Assembly (NCBI GenBank): GCA_000708835.1
Contig: DF237521.1
Span: 1 to 57,470, forward strand
Direction of reading: 5' to 3'
DNA length: 57,470 bases
DNA from: Klebsormidium nitens
Lineage: Eukaryota > Plantae > Klebsormidiophyceae
Both the position numbers and the translations under genes were made by a program. Below the pieces are notes generated by a model, which was not told the origin of the DNA, did no database searches, and saw nothing but the letters and a program-made list of their open reading frames with translations. Below, one piece after another: positions 51,956 through 57,470 of the stretch; the first letter of the stretch is position 1; each line of letters opens with the position of its first letter.

Positions 51956-52708
51956 AACAAATGCTGGCGCGACGAATCTGCGGCTACGGATATAAGAACC
52001 GTCCGATCGAGCACACGACACCCCAACCGTTCGATTCCCCTTAGCCCGGCAGCAGCCCCCGGTCAAGGCAAACCCGCCAGCTAGAGTCGGTTAGACGCGA
52101 GCTCGCGGCAGGGAGACCGAACGCGTCACGACGCGCCATTGCAGCGGAATCCAGACGCCAGCTGGTGAATACATCCGCTCAGTGCTCACAATTCAACTGG
52201 TTGAAATCTGTTCGGAGGATCAAGCCTCAGCTGGCTGCATCTACCTGTAGGCTCTGCCGCATAGGGAAGCCCCAGGGAGTCACTCACATAATGGCACATT
52301 GAAATATGATTCTGGTCTTGGCAGTCTTGGCAAGCGAGCCACGTCAATGACTCGGCGTCCTCAACAATACTGATACTGATTACGCACGTGTATACAGCCC
52401 AATTGCTCATGCTCTGGAGAAGCGGCTGGACTTCGATGTTCTCTCATACTCTTCAACATTTCAAAAAGAGTAATTGGTAAGCCCTAACGAAGGCATTAAG
52501 CTTGGGGTTTGATGATAACAGCCACGACATGGAATACAACCTTGCTCTCTTCGTGATTCCTGTAAGAGTCTCTACTTTTGCGTTCCCTCCTGAGCCGCGT
52601 GCCTGTATGCGCAAGACAAAGCGACAAGTTTGACCGCTCGCGTACGCATTCTTCTCTCCCTATCTCATCCCAAAGCCCTATTTAATCTACCGACGCCCAT
52701 CCAATTAC

Positions 52709-55572
52709 CTACAAGCTAGGCCTACTCTCCGTTTCCATACGACCTTCTCGCCCCTGCTCTCTACCTCCCGCTACTCCCGTCTTTCCCGCATATTCAGCCG
52801 CCGCAGCAGCGGCATCCCCCCGGTGCTTTGCGAGCAGCTCTTTTCGCGTCGTGTCCCAATCGCTCCCAGCCCAAGGAAACCCGTTGCATGCCGCAAGCAT
52901 CTTCGATTCCGTCCGCGTCTCGGGAGTGGCCCGCCCAACTAATGACAGGACCACTTGCTGCTTCTCCGGCAGGATACCTGTTACGCGAACCTGCACAGAT
53001 CCAGATTCGGACTTTGGATTCAGGAGATTGACAGAGGATCAGCGGCCTGGCCACTTGATGATCGTTTACGAGAAAGAAGCCACTCGCTGATACTTATCGA
53101 AGAACAAACCAAAGAAACCCTGAATCCTTGCCCAGATCCTCACGAGGTGGTGATGAGTCTTTTACCGAGGGCTTATGTCAGCAATTTCTGTTCCTGGCTT
53201 TAGCCGTTTCTCAAGACTTCGTCTTTAAGACTCGCGCTTTTAAGCAAACAAAAAGAAAATAGTGAATTCAAACAGATCTCTTCGGCTCAACAAACTTCGA
53301 GGCCACCAGATTATTAATAGTAGGGTCGCAGGAGGAAAATACAGTGATCTGTTTGTTCACTCAAACAAGGACCGAGAAGAAAAGAGCTGCCGCCGACTGA
53401 TGCGCTATTTCGGCAGCCAAATCCGGTAACCCAAGCGAACTCTCTCTTTTGCTGCACATCTTCTGCCGCTTGCTACTCGTGGCCTCAACTCGCATACGTC
53501 CACAACCGACTCACCTCGAGCGACTTCAAAACTTTACCACCTTCCAAGTCGCAGTTTGCGCAGTACTGACTCACCTTGAGCTTCACAGCATACAGTGTCC
53601 TCTCAAGTTCCTCCCTCGCTCGCGGCGCCTCCCCATCAAACCCTCCCGTCAAACCCTTCCGCTCCGCACTTGCCCCGTTCTTCCCTTCTTCTCGCCCACT
53701 TGTCGAAGGCTCGTCGGATCCCCCCTCGGGAGGAGACCACGAAAACATATGGGCGGGAATGAAGCCCTTCCAGGCCTGTCCGAGATCGACCACTGCGCCG
53801 TCAGGACCAACTTCGGACAGCTTTCCGACCAGTAGGCGTCCGATTTGGCTGACCCGCCGAACCTTGGCCTCGTCCGACTTTTTGGGGGTTGGGGGCGGGC
53901 CCGTCTTGGGCGGCGCCAGTGCCTGCGCAAGAGATTGTGCGTTGAACGTAAAAACGTCTGTGCAGATTCCAAGTCGGTGCTCTGCCTCATAGTCAGTTTC
54001 AGGCTGATGATTCCTTTGCCGGCCATCCTGGAAGTATATCTGTTGTCGCGTTATTGAAGTCGCCTTCGGCCCTCATTCTGCTGTTCTTGTATGGTTCGTT
54101 CTGCCGCAACTGGTAGAGACTCAGCAAAACTAATGTCTTGGCCTCTGTAATGTGTTGGCTACAACCAGAATGACGACTAACATGACCCAGCCGCCCTCCA
54201 TTTCGGGTATCTTGAGTCAGGAAATGGAGGATCATGTTTGCAGACCTTCTGTCGTCCTTTCAAAAACGCATGCCACTCAGAAAGACGCACGCCAACAAGC
54301 GCTTAACAGAGTTCGGCGGACTCCGACGAACAAAGCGGGGCACGACATAGAAAACTTCAGGGTGCAGAAACATGCTGCACGCACAACTGATCTCAAAAAA
54401 CGCCTTACAGCGTGGCCAGTTGTACGCCTGACAATTGACCAGACTACCTGGTTGGGAACCTCGTCGCCCCATTATTTTGCGCACTACGAACTTACAGCCT
54501 CACTCCGCATTGCTCAGCCACTCACTCAGCGACTGAAGGTCACGACCGCATCCAGCCTCTAGACCAACTTCACTCCACATTGCTACAAGAGATCCATTGG
54601 AGCACCACGAAAGATTTGAAACGTAGAAAGATTTTGAGCGCAAGCCAACCTAGATTCGAGTTGAAGGTCAAGATTACACAAAACCGCAACACCGCGCTCC
54701 CTTACCTCACGCCAGGCTTGGGCGACCATCTTGCGCAGGTACTCGTCGCGCTGGGCTGCGTCGGGTATCTCCACTCGTTTCTCCGACGTCGAAAGCCGCT
54801 CCAGGAACGAAAGGTTGACCAGGCCGCAGGCGGGGTCCAGGGATCCCTCTACTCGAACCTGCAATCGAGGAACTTATCATCGGTGCTCTTTGCAGGCCCT
54901 CACAGATTGCTCACCACGAAAACGGTGGAGTTAAGGAGAAGTCCCAGGATCCCCTACTTGAACTTGCATATAACGACTCGTCAGCACTCACTCGGTTTTA
55001 CCAACAGCTAGATGGACCCTGCAGCCGCACCCGCCGAGTTTGTCCCGGCTCGCTTCTGGTTTAGACGAGGTTTCTGCAAAGCTTTTGATGTGGGGGCCCT
55101 GAACCATGTTGCCTCTGGTCAACAGGCTGCATGGGAGTTGCAGAAGCTCAAACGCTCACAGCGCAGGGAGCGGCGTTGAGAAGCAAACGAAAACCATTTC
55201 CAGAGCCTCGAAGGAGACTTAGAGACACCAGACGGAATTGTCGAAGTCCGGACCGGACTCGAGAAACTTTTGGCCTGAAGAAACCTGAAGAACCTAAACT
55301 TGAAGAATCCTCAATCAAACGCATAGCACTGCAGACAAAGACGGGCGACTCCGACCAGACGGGAATAGCAAGCTGCCTCCTACCTTGATCACCTCCCCTT
55401 TGACTGCGCCTTCCATCGCTTTCCACCACCCGTCCGCTGCTTCCGGATTGTCTGGGGGCCTGACAATCCCTGGAAGGCCGATCCCGAGGTCTACCACCGC
55501 ACCCCGCCAGTGCATGCCCCAAAACATGCCCTGTACCTCTGCCCCCCTCGTGAGGAACTCCGTCCGGAAACC
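52709..55572 (-). CDS. Two S1 RNA-binding domains (exons 55572-55384, 54858-54706, 54027-53575, 52990-52709), probably the C-terminal part of the uS17 gene
   Basis: S1-like 1: GAEVQG...GAVVDLGIGLPGIV...GEVIK|VRVEGSLDPACGLVNLSF. S1-like 2: IGRLLVGKLSEVGPDGAVVDLGQAWKGFIP...LK|VRVTGILPEKQQVVLSL. All introns are phase 0 and all exon lengths are multiples of 3. I found no convincing independent start codon. Confidence 0.75.
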
Positions 55573-55950
55573 CTGCACGATCAACGAAGCACATGGTTGA
55601 GATTGACACGCCTTTGAAGAAATCTGCATTCCGGGACAAGGAACTAATATAGAAAGTCTGCAGGAATGATGTGGCGCATGGTCCGAAAACCCTGCACAAT
55701 CTATGGAGCACATGGTTGGATTTGATGCGCCTTCGAGGAGGCTTGCAATCCAAGCATTTGCAAGCGAGGAACTACTCTCGAAAGGCTGCAAGAACAATGT
55801 GGCGCCGTTTTGGTGTTTGGGCCTGCCTGATGATCTTGAGCCACCCTTCAACACAGTTAAGAGGTTCGCTCTTCATATTTTTCAATCTCAAGATCCCCCA
55901 GTCCAGAGGAAGGTTGCTTCGAAGAAGAAAATAAGGTAGCGAGTGCTCAC

Positions 55951-57167
55951 AACGACCGGCTTTGGAGTGAGCGGAAGGGATACCGCCTGCGCGGCCGCCC
56001 GCTCCGCTGCGTAATCAGAAGTGTCGAAGATGCGCTCCTTCTTGAGGATCTCCGAGACCACCCAGGCCTTGTTCTTGCTGATGGGCCGCGACGACTCAAT
56101 CTGGACCTGGAACAGTACAAATCGCCCATGCTTGAGTACAAAATGTGTGATTGGCTCTTATTATGTGTTATGTTTGCTGGTGACTATGTTCAAATGAAAG
56201 TGCAGAGCCTTTGTCCTAAGGATAGGAGTACCTCCCTTGAGCCTCTTGCCCGAAACCGCAGGAGTCTATCGGTCCTAACCACAGAAAGTCCTTGCTTTCT
56301 GGCAACCCCTTGTCTTGCCTTTGACCACCAGCTTTGTGCCCTCAGTCAAAAGAAAGGATACCACTTGAACTTTTCTGATGGAAGGGCGCTTGACCACATT
56401 CACCACTGACAAGGTGCTCATCCGTACCAATCACGACTACTCGACCAAACAGTAAGCAGATTCATTGACACCACCGATTGAACCCAGCAATGTGCACTTC
56501 TCTCCATCAGCAGCAATGACAGAAGGCGAATTGCTCAGAACTGCCTGGATTACCACCGATCGTACTGGTGCTCAATGCAATGTTGTGGTGTAACAATTCG
56601 CAGATATATCACGCCGGCGTTTGCAGCATGGTCTGAGCAACGCTATCCTTTGGAGGAACCACTAACCAGTGCTCCTGGTCAACTGCAATTTTGTAAAGCT
56701 TTGTGCACCTACACTGTAAGGCCACAGCCGCGACGCTAAAACGCATTCACACAATCCAACTCTCCTGCCACTCCACAGAGTACGGAATCACCACATTCTT
56801 CCAGATCCTGGTCGATGGTGAATCTAAAGAAGCCGTGAGCGTAGTGAAAGCCCCGGGGTAGCACCAGACGTGGTGTCTATCAAGCACTTAACCAAGTTTG
56901 GTTGAGCAGGCGGATGCACCACCCTGTCCACCAAATAGAGGGTAATGCCGCGGACGATAAACGCAAGCTGCAGTCGCAAAGGTTCATTCTCTTCACCTGA
57001 TCGCCCTCGTTGCAAGCCTGCAGCTCGTCGTGCGCCATGAACTTCCGGGAGGCGCGCACAAAGCGGTGGTAGCGCGGGTGCCGGAAGAAGTGATCGACCT
57101 TCACCGTCACCGACTTCTGCATCTTGGTGGAGACGACAACCCCGACAAACCTGGACATAGCCCCCAT
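55951..57167 (-). CDS. rps17: Organellar (mitochondrial-type) ribosomal protein uS17 portion (exons 57167-56997, 56106-55951)
   Basis: FVGVVVSTKMQKSVTVKVDHFFRHPRYHRFVRASRKFMAHDE...CNEGDQ|VQIESSRPISKNKAWVVSEILKKERIF is a uS17 signature. There is no transit peptide, as in plant mitochondrial uS17. If the following intron is retained the ORF stops at 55888-55890 (129 aa). Confidence 0.92.
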
Positions 57168-57426
57168 GGCTGAGAGGTGAGGCCTAACAAAGCGCCCCCA
57201 AAGTCTGTGTGTAGGCGACCTTCTACCTAGTAGTAGTACTACTAGTTGAAGGATGAACAATCTGAGGACACCACGCTCATCAGCTGGAGACGTGGGACTC
57301 CTATACCTGGCGATGGTCGCCGGAGCGCGGGTGCCAAACCGCACGGCGGCCCCTGGGAGGCGGCGACGACCTCGACTTACGAGGAATTATACACCCTTTT
57401 TACCCCGCACGCGGCATGACCCGTAG

Positions 57427-57470
57427 TGCGTTTGCGAGGGATCGAACCCAGGTCCCTCGCAGGCATTGAC
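57427..57470 (-). other. 3' half of a tRNA-like sequence (pseudo-tRNA or tRNA-derived SINE), truncated by the window edge
   Basis: Minus strand reads GCGAG GGAC CTGGG TTCGATC CCTCG CAAACGC A: B-box GGTTCGATCCC with tRNA-Gly-like spacing. The T-stem is imperfect and no oligo-T terminator follows. Confidence 0.35.

Follow-up and report, generated by a model that had tools for sequence, protein, structure and literature searches.

A spliced uS17–S1 gene of Klebsormidium nitens: evidence for a mitochondrial-type uS17 carrying two divergent S1-like domains

Can a core protein of the mitochondrial ribosome, uS17, carry an RNA-binding module as part of the same polypeptide? This question is raised by a locus on the minus strand of a stretch of 57,470 nucleotides (nt) from the alga Klebsormidium nitens (contig DF237521.1, positions 1 to 57,470, GenBank assembly GCA_000708835.1), which is called the window hereafter. 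Between 57167 and 52709 of the window, exons encoding uS17 are followed by exons encoding two domains that resemble those of ribosomal protein S1. An earlier reading of the letters alone, the original prediction, had proposed that these two sets of exons are spliced into one open reading frame (ORF) and that retention of the intron between them may act as a switch that releases a free uS17. The present analysis will address the structure and expression of this gene, the identity of its two parts, their conservation in relatives and the role that such a fusion may play in the mitoribosome. It indicates that the first proposal holds, whereas the switch is not supported.

A single spliced transcript

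Rebuilt from the sequence, the gene comprises six exons and five introns with GT..AG ends throughout; the exon lengths are all divisible by three, so that the five introns are all in phase 0. Twenty sequencing runs from seven studies hold part of the stretch, and contigs of four runs from four studies were placed on 52400-57470. All five junctions are present in the contigs of these four runs, in which CT..AC on the plus strand corresponds to GT..AG on the minus strand. In particular, the junction from 55951 to 55572 that joins the uS17 exons to the S1 exons was looked for and found: in all four runs, the contigs pass from 55571 to 55950 and skip 378 nt. The junction between exons 1 and 2 (56995/56104) is likewise confirmed by contigs in four runs. 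The fusion joint and the neighbouring exons share one high-depth contig in each run, and single contigs of 1521 nt (run X10) and 1700 nt (run X9) reach from the 3' untranslated region (UTR) to the 5' UTR, covering both the uS17 and the S1 exons. None of the four runs shows any coverage within the fusion intron (bin 55630-55799), the adjacent bins matching the exon portions alone, and no transcript starts or ends inside this intron among the contigs of these runs. The fusion is expressed as one mRNA, the splicing of which appears constitutive. The proposal of one gene with two parts, in which a mitochondrial-type uS17 stands in frame with two S1-like domains, is thus seen directly in spliced contigs.

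The uS17-derived part, up to the fusion junction, amounts to 109 amino acids (aa). Exon 1 (56997-57167, minus strand as for all features of the gene) contains the ATG (57167-57165) and the first 57 uS17 codons, with an in-frame ATG again at codon 4. Exon 2 (55951-56106) contains the remaining 52 uS17 codons, which encode the C-terminal helix region and a Pro-rich linker (...LPLTPKPVV); the GT donor of the fusion intron follows directly. This intron, the second of the gene (55573-55950, 378 nt, phase 0, GT..AG), links the uS17 exons to the S1 exons. Both of its ends lie exactly where they had been placed: the donor reads CCG GTC GTT/gtgagc (exon end 55951; here and below, a slash marks the splice position) and the acceptor reads gatcgtgcag/GGT TTC CGG (exon start 55572), with phase 0 on both sides.

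The first S1-like domain, S1a, is split between two exons. Exon 3 (55384-55572) encodes about its first two thirds, i.e. strands 1-3, the helix and the beginning of strand 4, and exon 4 (54706-54858) encodes strands 4-5 and a conserved helical spacer. The second domain, S1b, is split in the same manner: exon 5 (53575-53922) encodes strands 1-3, together with a linker rich in Pro and Lys and an insertion of about 40-50 aa that is acidic and Gly-rich, and exon 6 (52709-52990) encodes strands 4-5 and a conserved tail (...GFPWAGSDWD...), up to the stop codon TAG (52711-52709). The coding sequence is 1299 nt long and gives a protein of 432 aa (47.2 kDa, isoelectric point (pI) 9.3), so that the length of 467 aa originally announced has to be corrected. 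On the 3' side, the UTR (52400-52708) measures at least about 310 nt, since contigs of runs X1 and X9 extend from the stop codon past 52400, and on the 5' side (57168-57278) transcript contigs extend to 57226 and 57278. The start codon is ambiguous. An ATG stands at codons 1 and 4 both in the window (57167-57156) and in one of the related loci presented below (L002), whereas another one (L001, positions 2582-2593) displays TTG at the first position and ATG solely at codon 4; the conserved start may therefore be codon 4, which would give 429 aa. As regards annotation, a uS17m gene model at this locus needs four additional exons.

Identity of the two halves

The N-terminal part is matched by the Pfam family Ribosomal_S17 (PF00366) over residues 9-76 and over the whole profile (positions 1-68 of 68), with a score of 101.5 bits for a cut-off of 25.9 (E 2.7e-29). 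The closest solved chain is 6xyw_Bp of the Arabidopsis mitoribosome (116 aa), residues 3-98 of which align with residues 6-100 of the present protein at E 3.3e-28; a second chain, the uS17m 9evs_P, scores almost as well (E 5.6e-28). The bacterial S17 chains reach E values of 1e-16 to 1e-19, and the plastid chains 28jw_q and 4v61_AQ reach 9.6e-14 and 1.2e-11, respectively. These two uS17m chains thus outscore both bacterial and plastid chains, in agreement with the type originally assigned. Moreover, the Ribosomal_S17 domain starts at residue 6-9, which leaves no place for a long presequence or transit peptide. Because of the large score gap and of this missing presequence, i.e. from a comparison of scores and not from a tree, the N-terminal part is identified as a mitochondrial-type uS17. 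According to a 2026 preprint, the plastid uS17 of the green lineage branches with uS17m.

The relationship of the C-terminal part to S1 repeats is more distant and was approached by several methods. A phmmer search of 1.84 billion protein cluster representatives gave 11 matches, nine of which come from close relatives and represent exon fragments of the gene described here. The sole convincing distant match is a protein of 1986 aa that carries 14 Pfam S1 stretches (P0014; E 2.1e-5, with 11 matched stretches). Sixteen repeats taken from this protein were then compared, using hhalign, with a three-taxon alignment of each domain. S1a matches these S1 repeats with P 1.2e-4 (columns 2-72 of 75) and S1b with P 5.8e-6 (columns 3-73 of 75), the latter with about 40 extra aa inserted after strand 3 and before strand 4. 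When the C-terminal part was used in a profile search of the PDB, ribosomal protein S1 accounted for 10 of the 11 best matches (best E 2.5e-4); a plain phmmer search of the PDB with the same part found nothing meaningful (E above 1). Language-model features, which provide leads only, point to the same family, since S1 occurs in nearly all of the listed matches that bear a family, both for exon 3 alone (best score 0.88) and for exon 5 alone (score 0.85). The remaining phmmer match among the 11, a beta-propeller repeat protein (P0015, E 6e-4), is regarded as spurious.

A structural model points in the same direction for S1a. With orthologous exon pieces and 16 true S1 repeats as input alignment, AlphaFold2 (AF2) gave for the 82-aa core of S1a a predicted local distance difference test (pLDDT) score of 90. 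The model displays strands at 8-17, 20-24, 31-33, 57-66 and 73-80 and a helix at 39-50, and therefore the order strand 1-2-3, helix, strand 4-5. Among the Foldseek matches listed for this model, most are S1-domain or S1-like OB proteins (TM 0.6-0.7), including MJ1198, Tex, bS1 domains, RpsA, aIF2-alpha, exosome caps and chains of the mammalian mitoribosome.

Several results weigh against so simple an assignment. The Pfam S1 family (PF00575) reaches 18.3 bits on the N-terminal half of S1b for a gathering score of 22 (E 0.0031), and it gives no match on S1a even when E values as high as 1 are admitted. Applied to the entire C-terminal part, with orthologues alone in the alignment (where MAFFT had put one S1a fragment onto S1b), AF2 gave a pLDDT of 34. 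The model of the S1a core is not independent evidence, its input alignment having held true S1 repeats. Furthermore, S1a is acidic (pI 4.8), unlike the simple RNA-binding surface that would be expected. S1b carries an acidic, Gly-rich loop, and the spacer between both domains is basic and Pro/Lys-rich (pI 10.1). The original claim of two S1 domains therefore stands as regards a significant relation to true S1 repeats, found by phmmer, hhalign and the PDB profile search, but both domains remain below the gathering score of the family. Overall, the data support a C-terminal part made of two S1-like OB domains, which are called divergent and S1-like because this gathering score is not reached.

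The intron positions shed light on the origin of this part. The intron that splits S1a (55384/54858) and the one that splits S1b (53575/52990) lie at the same aligned residue (K/VRV) in the same phase, and the nucleotides that flank them are similar (AAG/GTTCG.GTA). Because the two domains are split at the same aligned position and phase, S1a and S1b most probably derive from a two-exon unit that was duplicated in tandem.

Relatives, alternative transcripts and flanking sequence

Relatives of the gene were reached through single-exon ORF fragments found by a word search and an exhaustive search, the source contigs of which were then retrieved. This led to four loci. Three of them, L002 (source SRR23617307, 88% nucleotide identity to the window in exon 5), L001 (JGI 3300060284, 79%) and L003 (JGI 3300060285, 78%), contain all six exons in the same order and orientation, and the fourth one, L004 (SRR14092360, 79%), is truncated in exon 3. 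Every exon boundary, phase and GT..AG site agrees with the window in L001 and L002; in L003, the donor and the acceptor of the fusion intron were checked and are conserved. In the relatives, PKPVV stands before the donor and GFR(T/K)EF after the acceptor. The junction peptide, PKPVV/GFR.EFLTRGAEVQG, is kept and ranks among the best conserved stretches of the protein.

The ratios of non-synonymous to synonymous substitutions (dN/dS, Nei-Gojobori) are low on both sides of the junction. Between the window and L002, they are 0.027 for uS17, 0.053 for S1a and 0.151 for S1b, with dS about 0.4; between the window and L001, they are 0.095, 0.152 and 0.270, respectively, with dS of 0.8-1.2. Exon 4 displays values of 0.05-0.16. 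These ratios indicate that purifying selection acts on every part of the fusion protein.

These data bear on the possibility that the joined mRNA is a read-through, or conjoined, transcript of two neighbouring genes that does not lead to any functional fusion protein. Its two halves do come from families that are normally encoded separately and, as all exons are in phase 0, a frame-preserving join would be easy. However, the joined form is the sole form assembled in four studies, and it is found at the main depth. Furthermore, lineages separated by dS of about 1 have kept the reading frame, the two splice sites and the residues at the junction, and the entire S1 part is under purifying selection. 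In L002 and L001, no in-frame ATG occurs between the last intronic stop and exon 3; therefore, the S1 part cannot be translated there from an intronic start. Together with the contigs, none of which begins or ends in the intron, this bears out the claim that the S1 exons have no gene start of their own, and a mere conjoined transcript is considered highly improbable.

The same comparison applies to the proposal of a regulated gene with two isoforms, the spliced one encoding the fusion and the one that retains the intron encoding a free uS17 with a hydrophobic tail. The retention ORF would end 20 codons into the 378-nt intron, and the predicted size of its product, 129 aa, is arithmetically right (109 + 20 aa, 14.7 kDa). 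An mRNA encoding uS17 alone was not assembled in any of the four runs, which contain the joined form only, although assembled contigs can drop rare variants and a minor retained isoform could thereby have escaped. However, the fusion intron is at zero depth in all four runs, whereas these runs do contain unspliced contigs of introns 3, 4 and 5, at depth 3-9. Indeed, low-depth contigs (3-9 versus about 95 for the exons) span much of introns 3-5 (52963-55290) in two to four runs, intron 1 is represented by one 230-nt contig in one run, and intron 2 is devoid of unspliced contigs in any run. The coverage of introns 3-5 looks like ordinary unspliced precursor, from which intron 2 is removed most efficiently. 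The intron sequence is not conserved either: 378 nt long in the window, it measures 748, 946 and 964 nt in its counterparts, and an alignment between the window and the closest relative is possible over the final 21 nt only. The tails that read-through would add in three taxa (20, 27 and 44 aa) are mutually dissimilar. In addition, the motifs AATAAA and TGTAA are absent from the three introns examined. The intron-retention switch is therefore abandoned here as very unlikely.

Globally, the conserved boundaries and junction, the purifying selection, the lack of any S1 start in L001 and L002 and the unrelated read-through tails argue for one functional polypeptide, and not for a conjoined-transcript artefact or a conserved retention isoform.

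A tandem duplication of about 110 nt, degenerate in sequence (55790-55555, minus strand), lies within the fusion intron and extends across its end; it copies the surroundings of the acceptor together with the initial 11 nt of exon 3. This creates a second acceptor-like site, attgtgcag/GGTTTTCGGAC, near 55692, from which an in-frame sequence without stop leads into exon 3; its use would add 120 nt, i.e. 40 aa. No contig among the four runs uses this site.

Another side observation concerns the sequence located upstream of the 5' UTR (57254-57470, minus strand), which runs off the end of the window. It carries a tRNA-like B box, GGGACCTGGGTTCGATCCCTCGC, at 57456-57434 and ends in a short simple repeat of the TAC/TAG type near 57254. 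The contigs that cover it reach a depth of about 1000 in one run and, at 57249-57254, branch into no fewer than four distinct continuations, which is what an expressed repeat present in many copies and similar to short interspersed nuclear elements (SINEs) would show. ARAGORN and Rfam scans of this tRNA-like element found no match, since the end of the window truncates it.

Comparison with known systems and possible role

As in plant uS17m (Arabidopsis AT1G49400; 6xyw chain Bp, 116 aa), the N-terminal part contains a complete Ribosomal_S17 OB domain that begins near the N-terminus and is not preceded by a long presequence. Unlike the Arabidopsis protein, which is a stand-alone protein of 116 aa, it is followed, after the same C-terminal region, by about 320 extra residues that carry two S1-like domains. 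The accession AT1G49400 for Arabidopsis uS17m is given in a table of PMC6953067.

Enlarged uS17m are found in other lineages, such as yeast (237 aa), Chlamydomonas (7pkq_q, 220 aa) and trypanosomatids (chains of 307-336 aa), and here too a conserved core has undergone a lineage-specific growth. However, the extensions of the trypanosomatid proteins are at least partly N-terminal (the S17 core lies at 94-166 of the chain), unlike the C-terminal extension described here, and PDB sequence searches with the C-terminal part did not match any of the yeast, Chlamydomonas or trypanosomatid uS17m chains.

The S1-like part recalls bS1, bS1m and plastid bS1c, in which repeated OB domains of the S1 type are likewise associated with a small subunit of bacterial type, an association that is predicted from sequence in the present case. 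In the PDB profile search, bS1 chains match the C-terminal part with E 2.5e-4 to 0.3, and bS1 is also found among the fold matches. However, bS1 is a separate polypeptide, held near uS2 at the mRNA exit by non-covalent contacts, whereas in the present protein two highly divergent domains would be covalently bound to a protein of the body, uS17. Concerning a possible orthology to rps1 or bS1m, no rps1/bS1m protein was found at E 1e-3 among the 1.84 billion proteins, and the likeness to bS1 stays at the generic level of S1 repeats.

A parallel for the expression of the gene is provided by grass rps14, which lies within sdh2 (PMC1543663): in both cases, a ribosome-related unit is expressed solely through splicing onto another nuclear gene for a mitochondrial protein. 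In grasses, however, alternative splicing leads to two products and only the targeting peptide of sdh2 is borrowed, whereas the splicing described here appears constitutive and the complete host protein is kept.

This analogy leads to the third alternative, in which uS17 would serve as a carrier for the S1 module. The module would then be a separate mitochondrial protein, possibly bS1m or the product of a transferred rps1, which would owe its expression and import to splicing onto the uS17m gene; once imported, the 47-kDa precursor would be cut into a free uS17m and a free S1 protein. Besides the rps14 precedent, this hypothesis is consistent with the short, Pro-rich and basic linker and with the fact that, among solved structures, the C-terminal part is closest in sequence to bS1 proteins. 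It also fits a tendency described in PMC3814193, according to which the mitochondrial DNA (mtDNA) of Klebsormidiales is unusually prone to the loss of ribosomal protein genes, rps8, rps10, rpl2 and rps19 being gone; the text of that paper makes no statement on rps1. However, specific similarity to mitochondrial rps1 or bS1m is lacking among the 1.84 billion proteins, and no alternative splicing was found that would give the host protein alone, unlike what occurs for rps14/sdh2. A whole uS17 is kept upstream, and not merely a targeting peptide; the good conservation of the junction peptide is explained by a structural linker no less well than by a site of cleavage; and the intron position shared by the two S1 units implies a long nuclear history. 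Hitch-hiking on uS17 is thus regarded as unlikely.

Overall, the preferred reading, which is held with good but not full confidence, is that of a constitutively spliced six-exon nuclear gene encoding a uS17m-S1 fusion, by which an S1 module is anchored to the mitochondrial small subunit, without any retention isoform. In the proposed protein, residues 1-100 would form a complete mitochondrial-type uS17 without any cleavable-looking presequence. A short, conserved, Pro-rich and basic linker of 12 residues, LPLTPKPVVGFR, would then lead from uS17 into the S1 module. This module would comprise S1a (about 113-192) and S1b (about 249-358, interrupted by the acidic, Gly-rich insertion of about 40-50 aa), separated by the basic, Pro/Lys-rich spacer and followed by a conserved tail of 70 aa. 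The uS17 core would dock where uS17 normally binds, within the body of the small subunit of the mitoribosome, and this docking would permanently anchor the S1 module at the surface of the ribosome, where it may act as an extra RNA-binding or scaffolding element that contacts an rRNA expansion or the mRNA.

Four points call for caution about this reading. Firstly, the sequencing runs were tagged 'RNA?' by guess, and their RNA nature is deduced from the contigs, because these are spliced with canonical intron ends. Secondly, the window is a single stretch of the genome, which may contain a second, stand-alone uS17m gene elsewhere. Thirdly, the precursor could be cleaved after import. Finally, in the 30S subunit, uS17 lies on the body, far from the site occupied by bS1 at the mRNA exit, and a role similar to that of bS1 is therefore not obvious. 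As uS17 is not beside the bS1 site, it is at least as likely that the module holds an rRNA expansion or a neighbouring protein as that it captures mRNA. That the S1-like domains bind mRNA or replace bS1 is an unproven proposal. The most far-reaching version, in which every Klebsormidium-type mitoribosome would carry two uS17m-tethered S1 domains that replace or supplement the recruitment of mRNA by bS1m, possibly after the loss of rps1 from the mtDNA, appears doubtful.

The distribution of this architecture seems to be narrow. At E 1e-3, phmmer did not find any relative of the C-terminal module in the 1.84 billion proteins outside a few Klebsormidium-like contigs, and a scan of metagenome contigs with the exon-5 alignment did not find any either. 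A full-length word search did not retrieve any S17-S1 fusion, its matches being S17-domain proteins with N-terminal extensions. The protein collections searched apparently do not include the annotated proteome of this alga, since no full-length model turned up. An S17-S1 fusion goes unmentioned in the uS17m and mitoribosome literature, including works on plants and Chlamydomonas and a 2026 pan-eukaryotic survey, domain-architecture databases lying outside this search. The opinion that this architecture had not been described is therefore upheld within the literature and databases covered, and the same literature did not yield any mitoribosome structure or proteome for this algal group. The fusion thus appears to be a lineage-specific accretion on a mitoribosomal protein, apparently undescribed so far.

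Mitoribosomes are noted for the lineage-specific accretion of proteins, but most of the described cases correspond to new subunits or to unstructured extensions. It is unusual in this respect to find uS17, a core protein and primary rRNA binder, covalently fused to tandem S1-like OB domains, which form a recognisable RNA-binding module; the alga concerned is an early-diverging streptophyte. For proteomics and cryo-electron microscopy, a simple handle is provided by the junction peptide and by the size of 47 kDa. If the tethered S1 module does recruit mRNA, it would constitute a new physical route by which mRNA is brought to an organellar small subunit. More generally, if the fusion is present intact in the small subunit, it would mark where this lineage has remodelled its mitoribosome.

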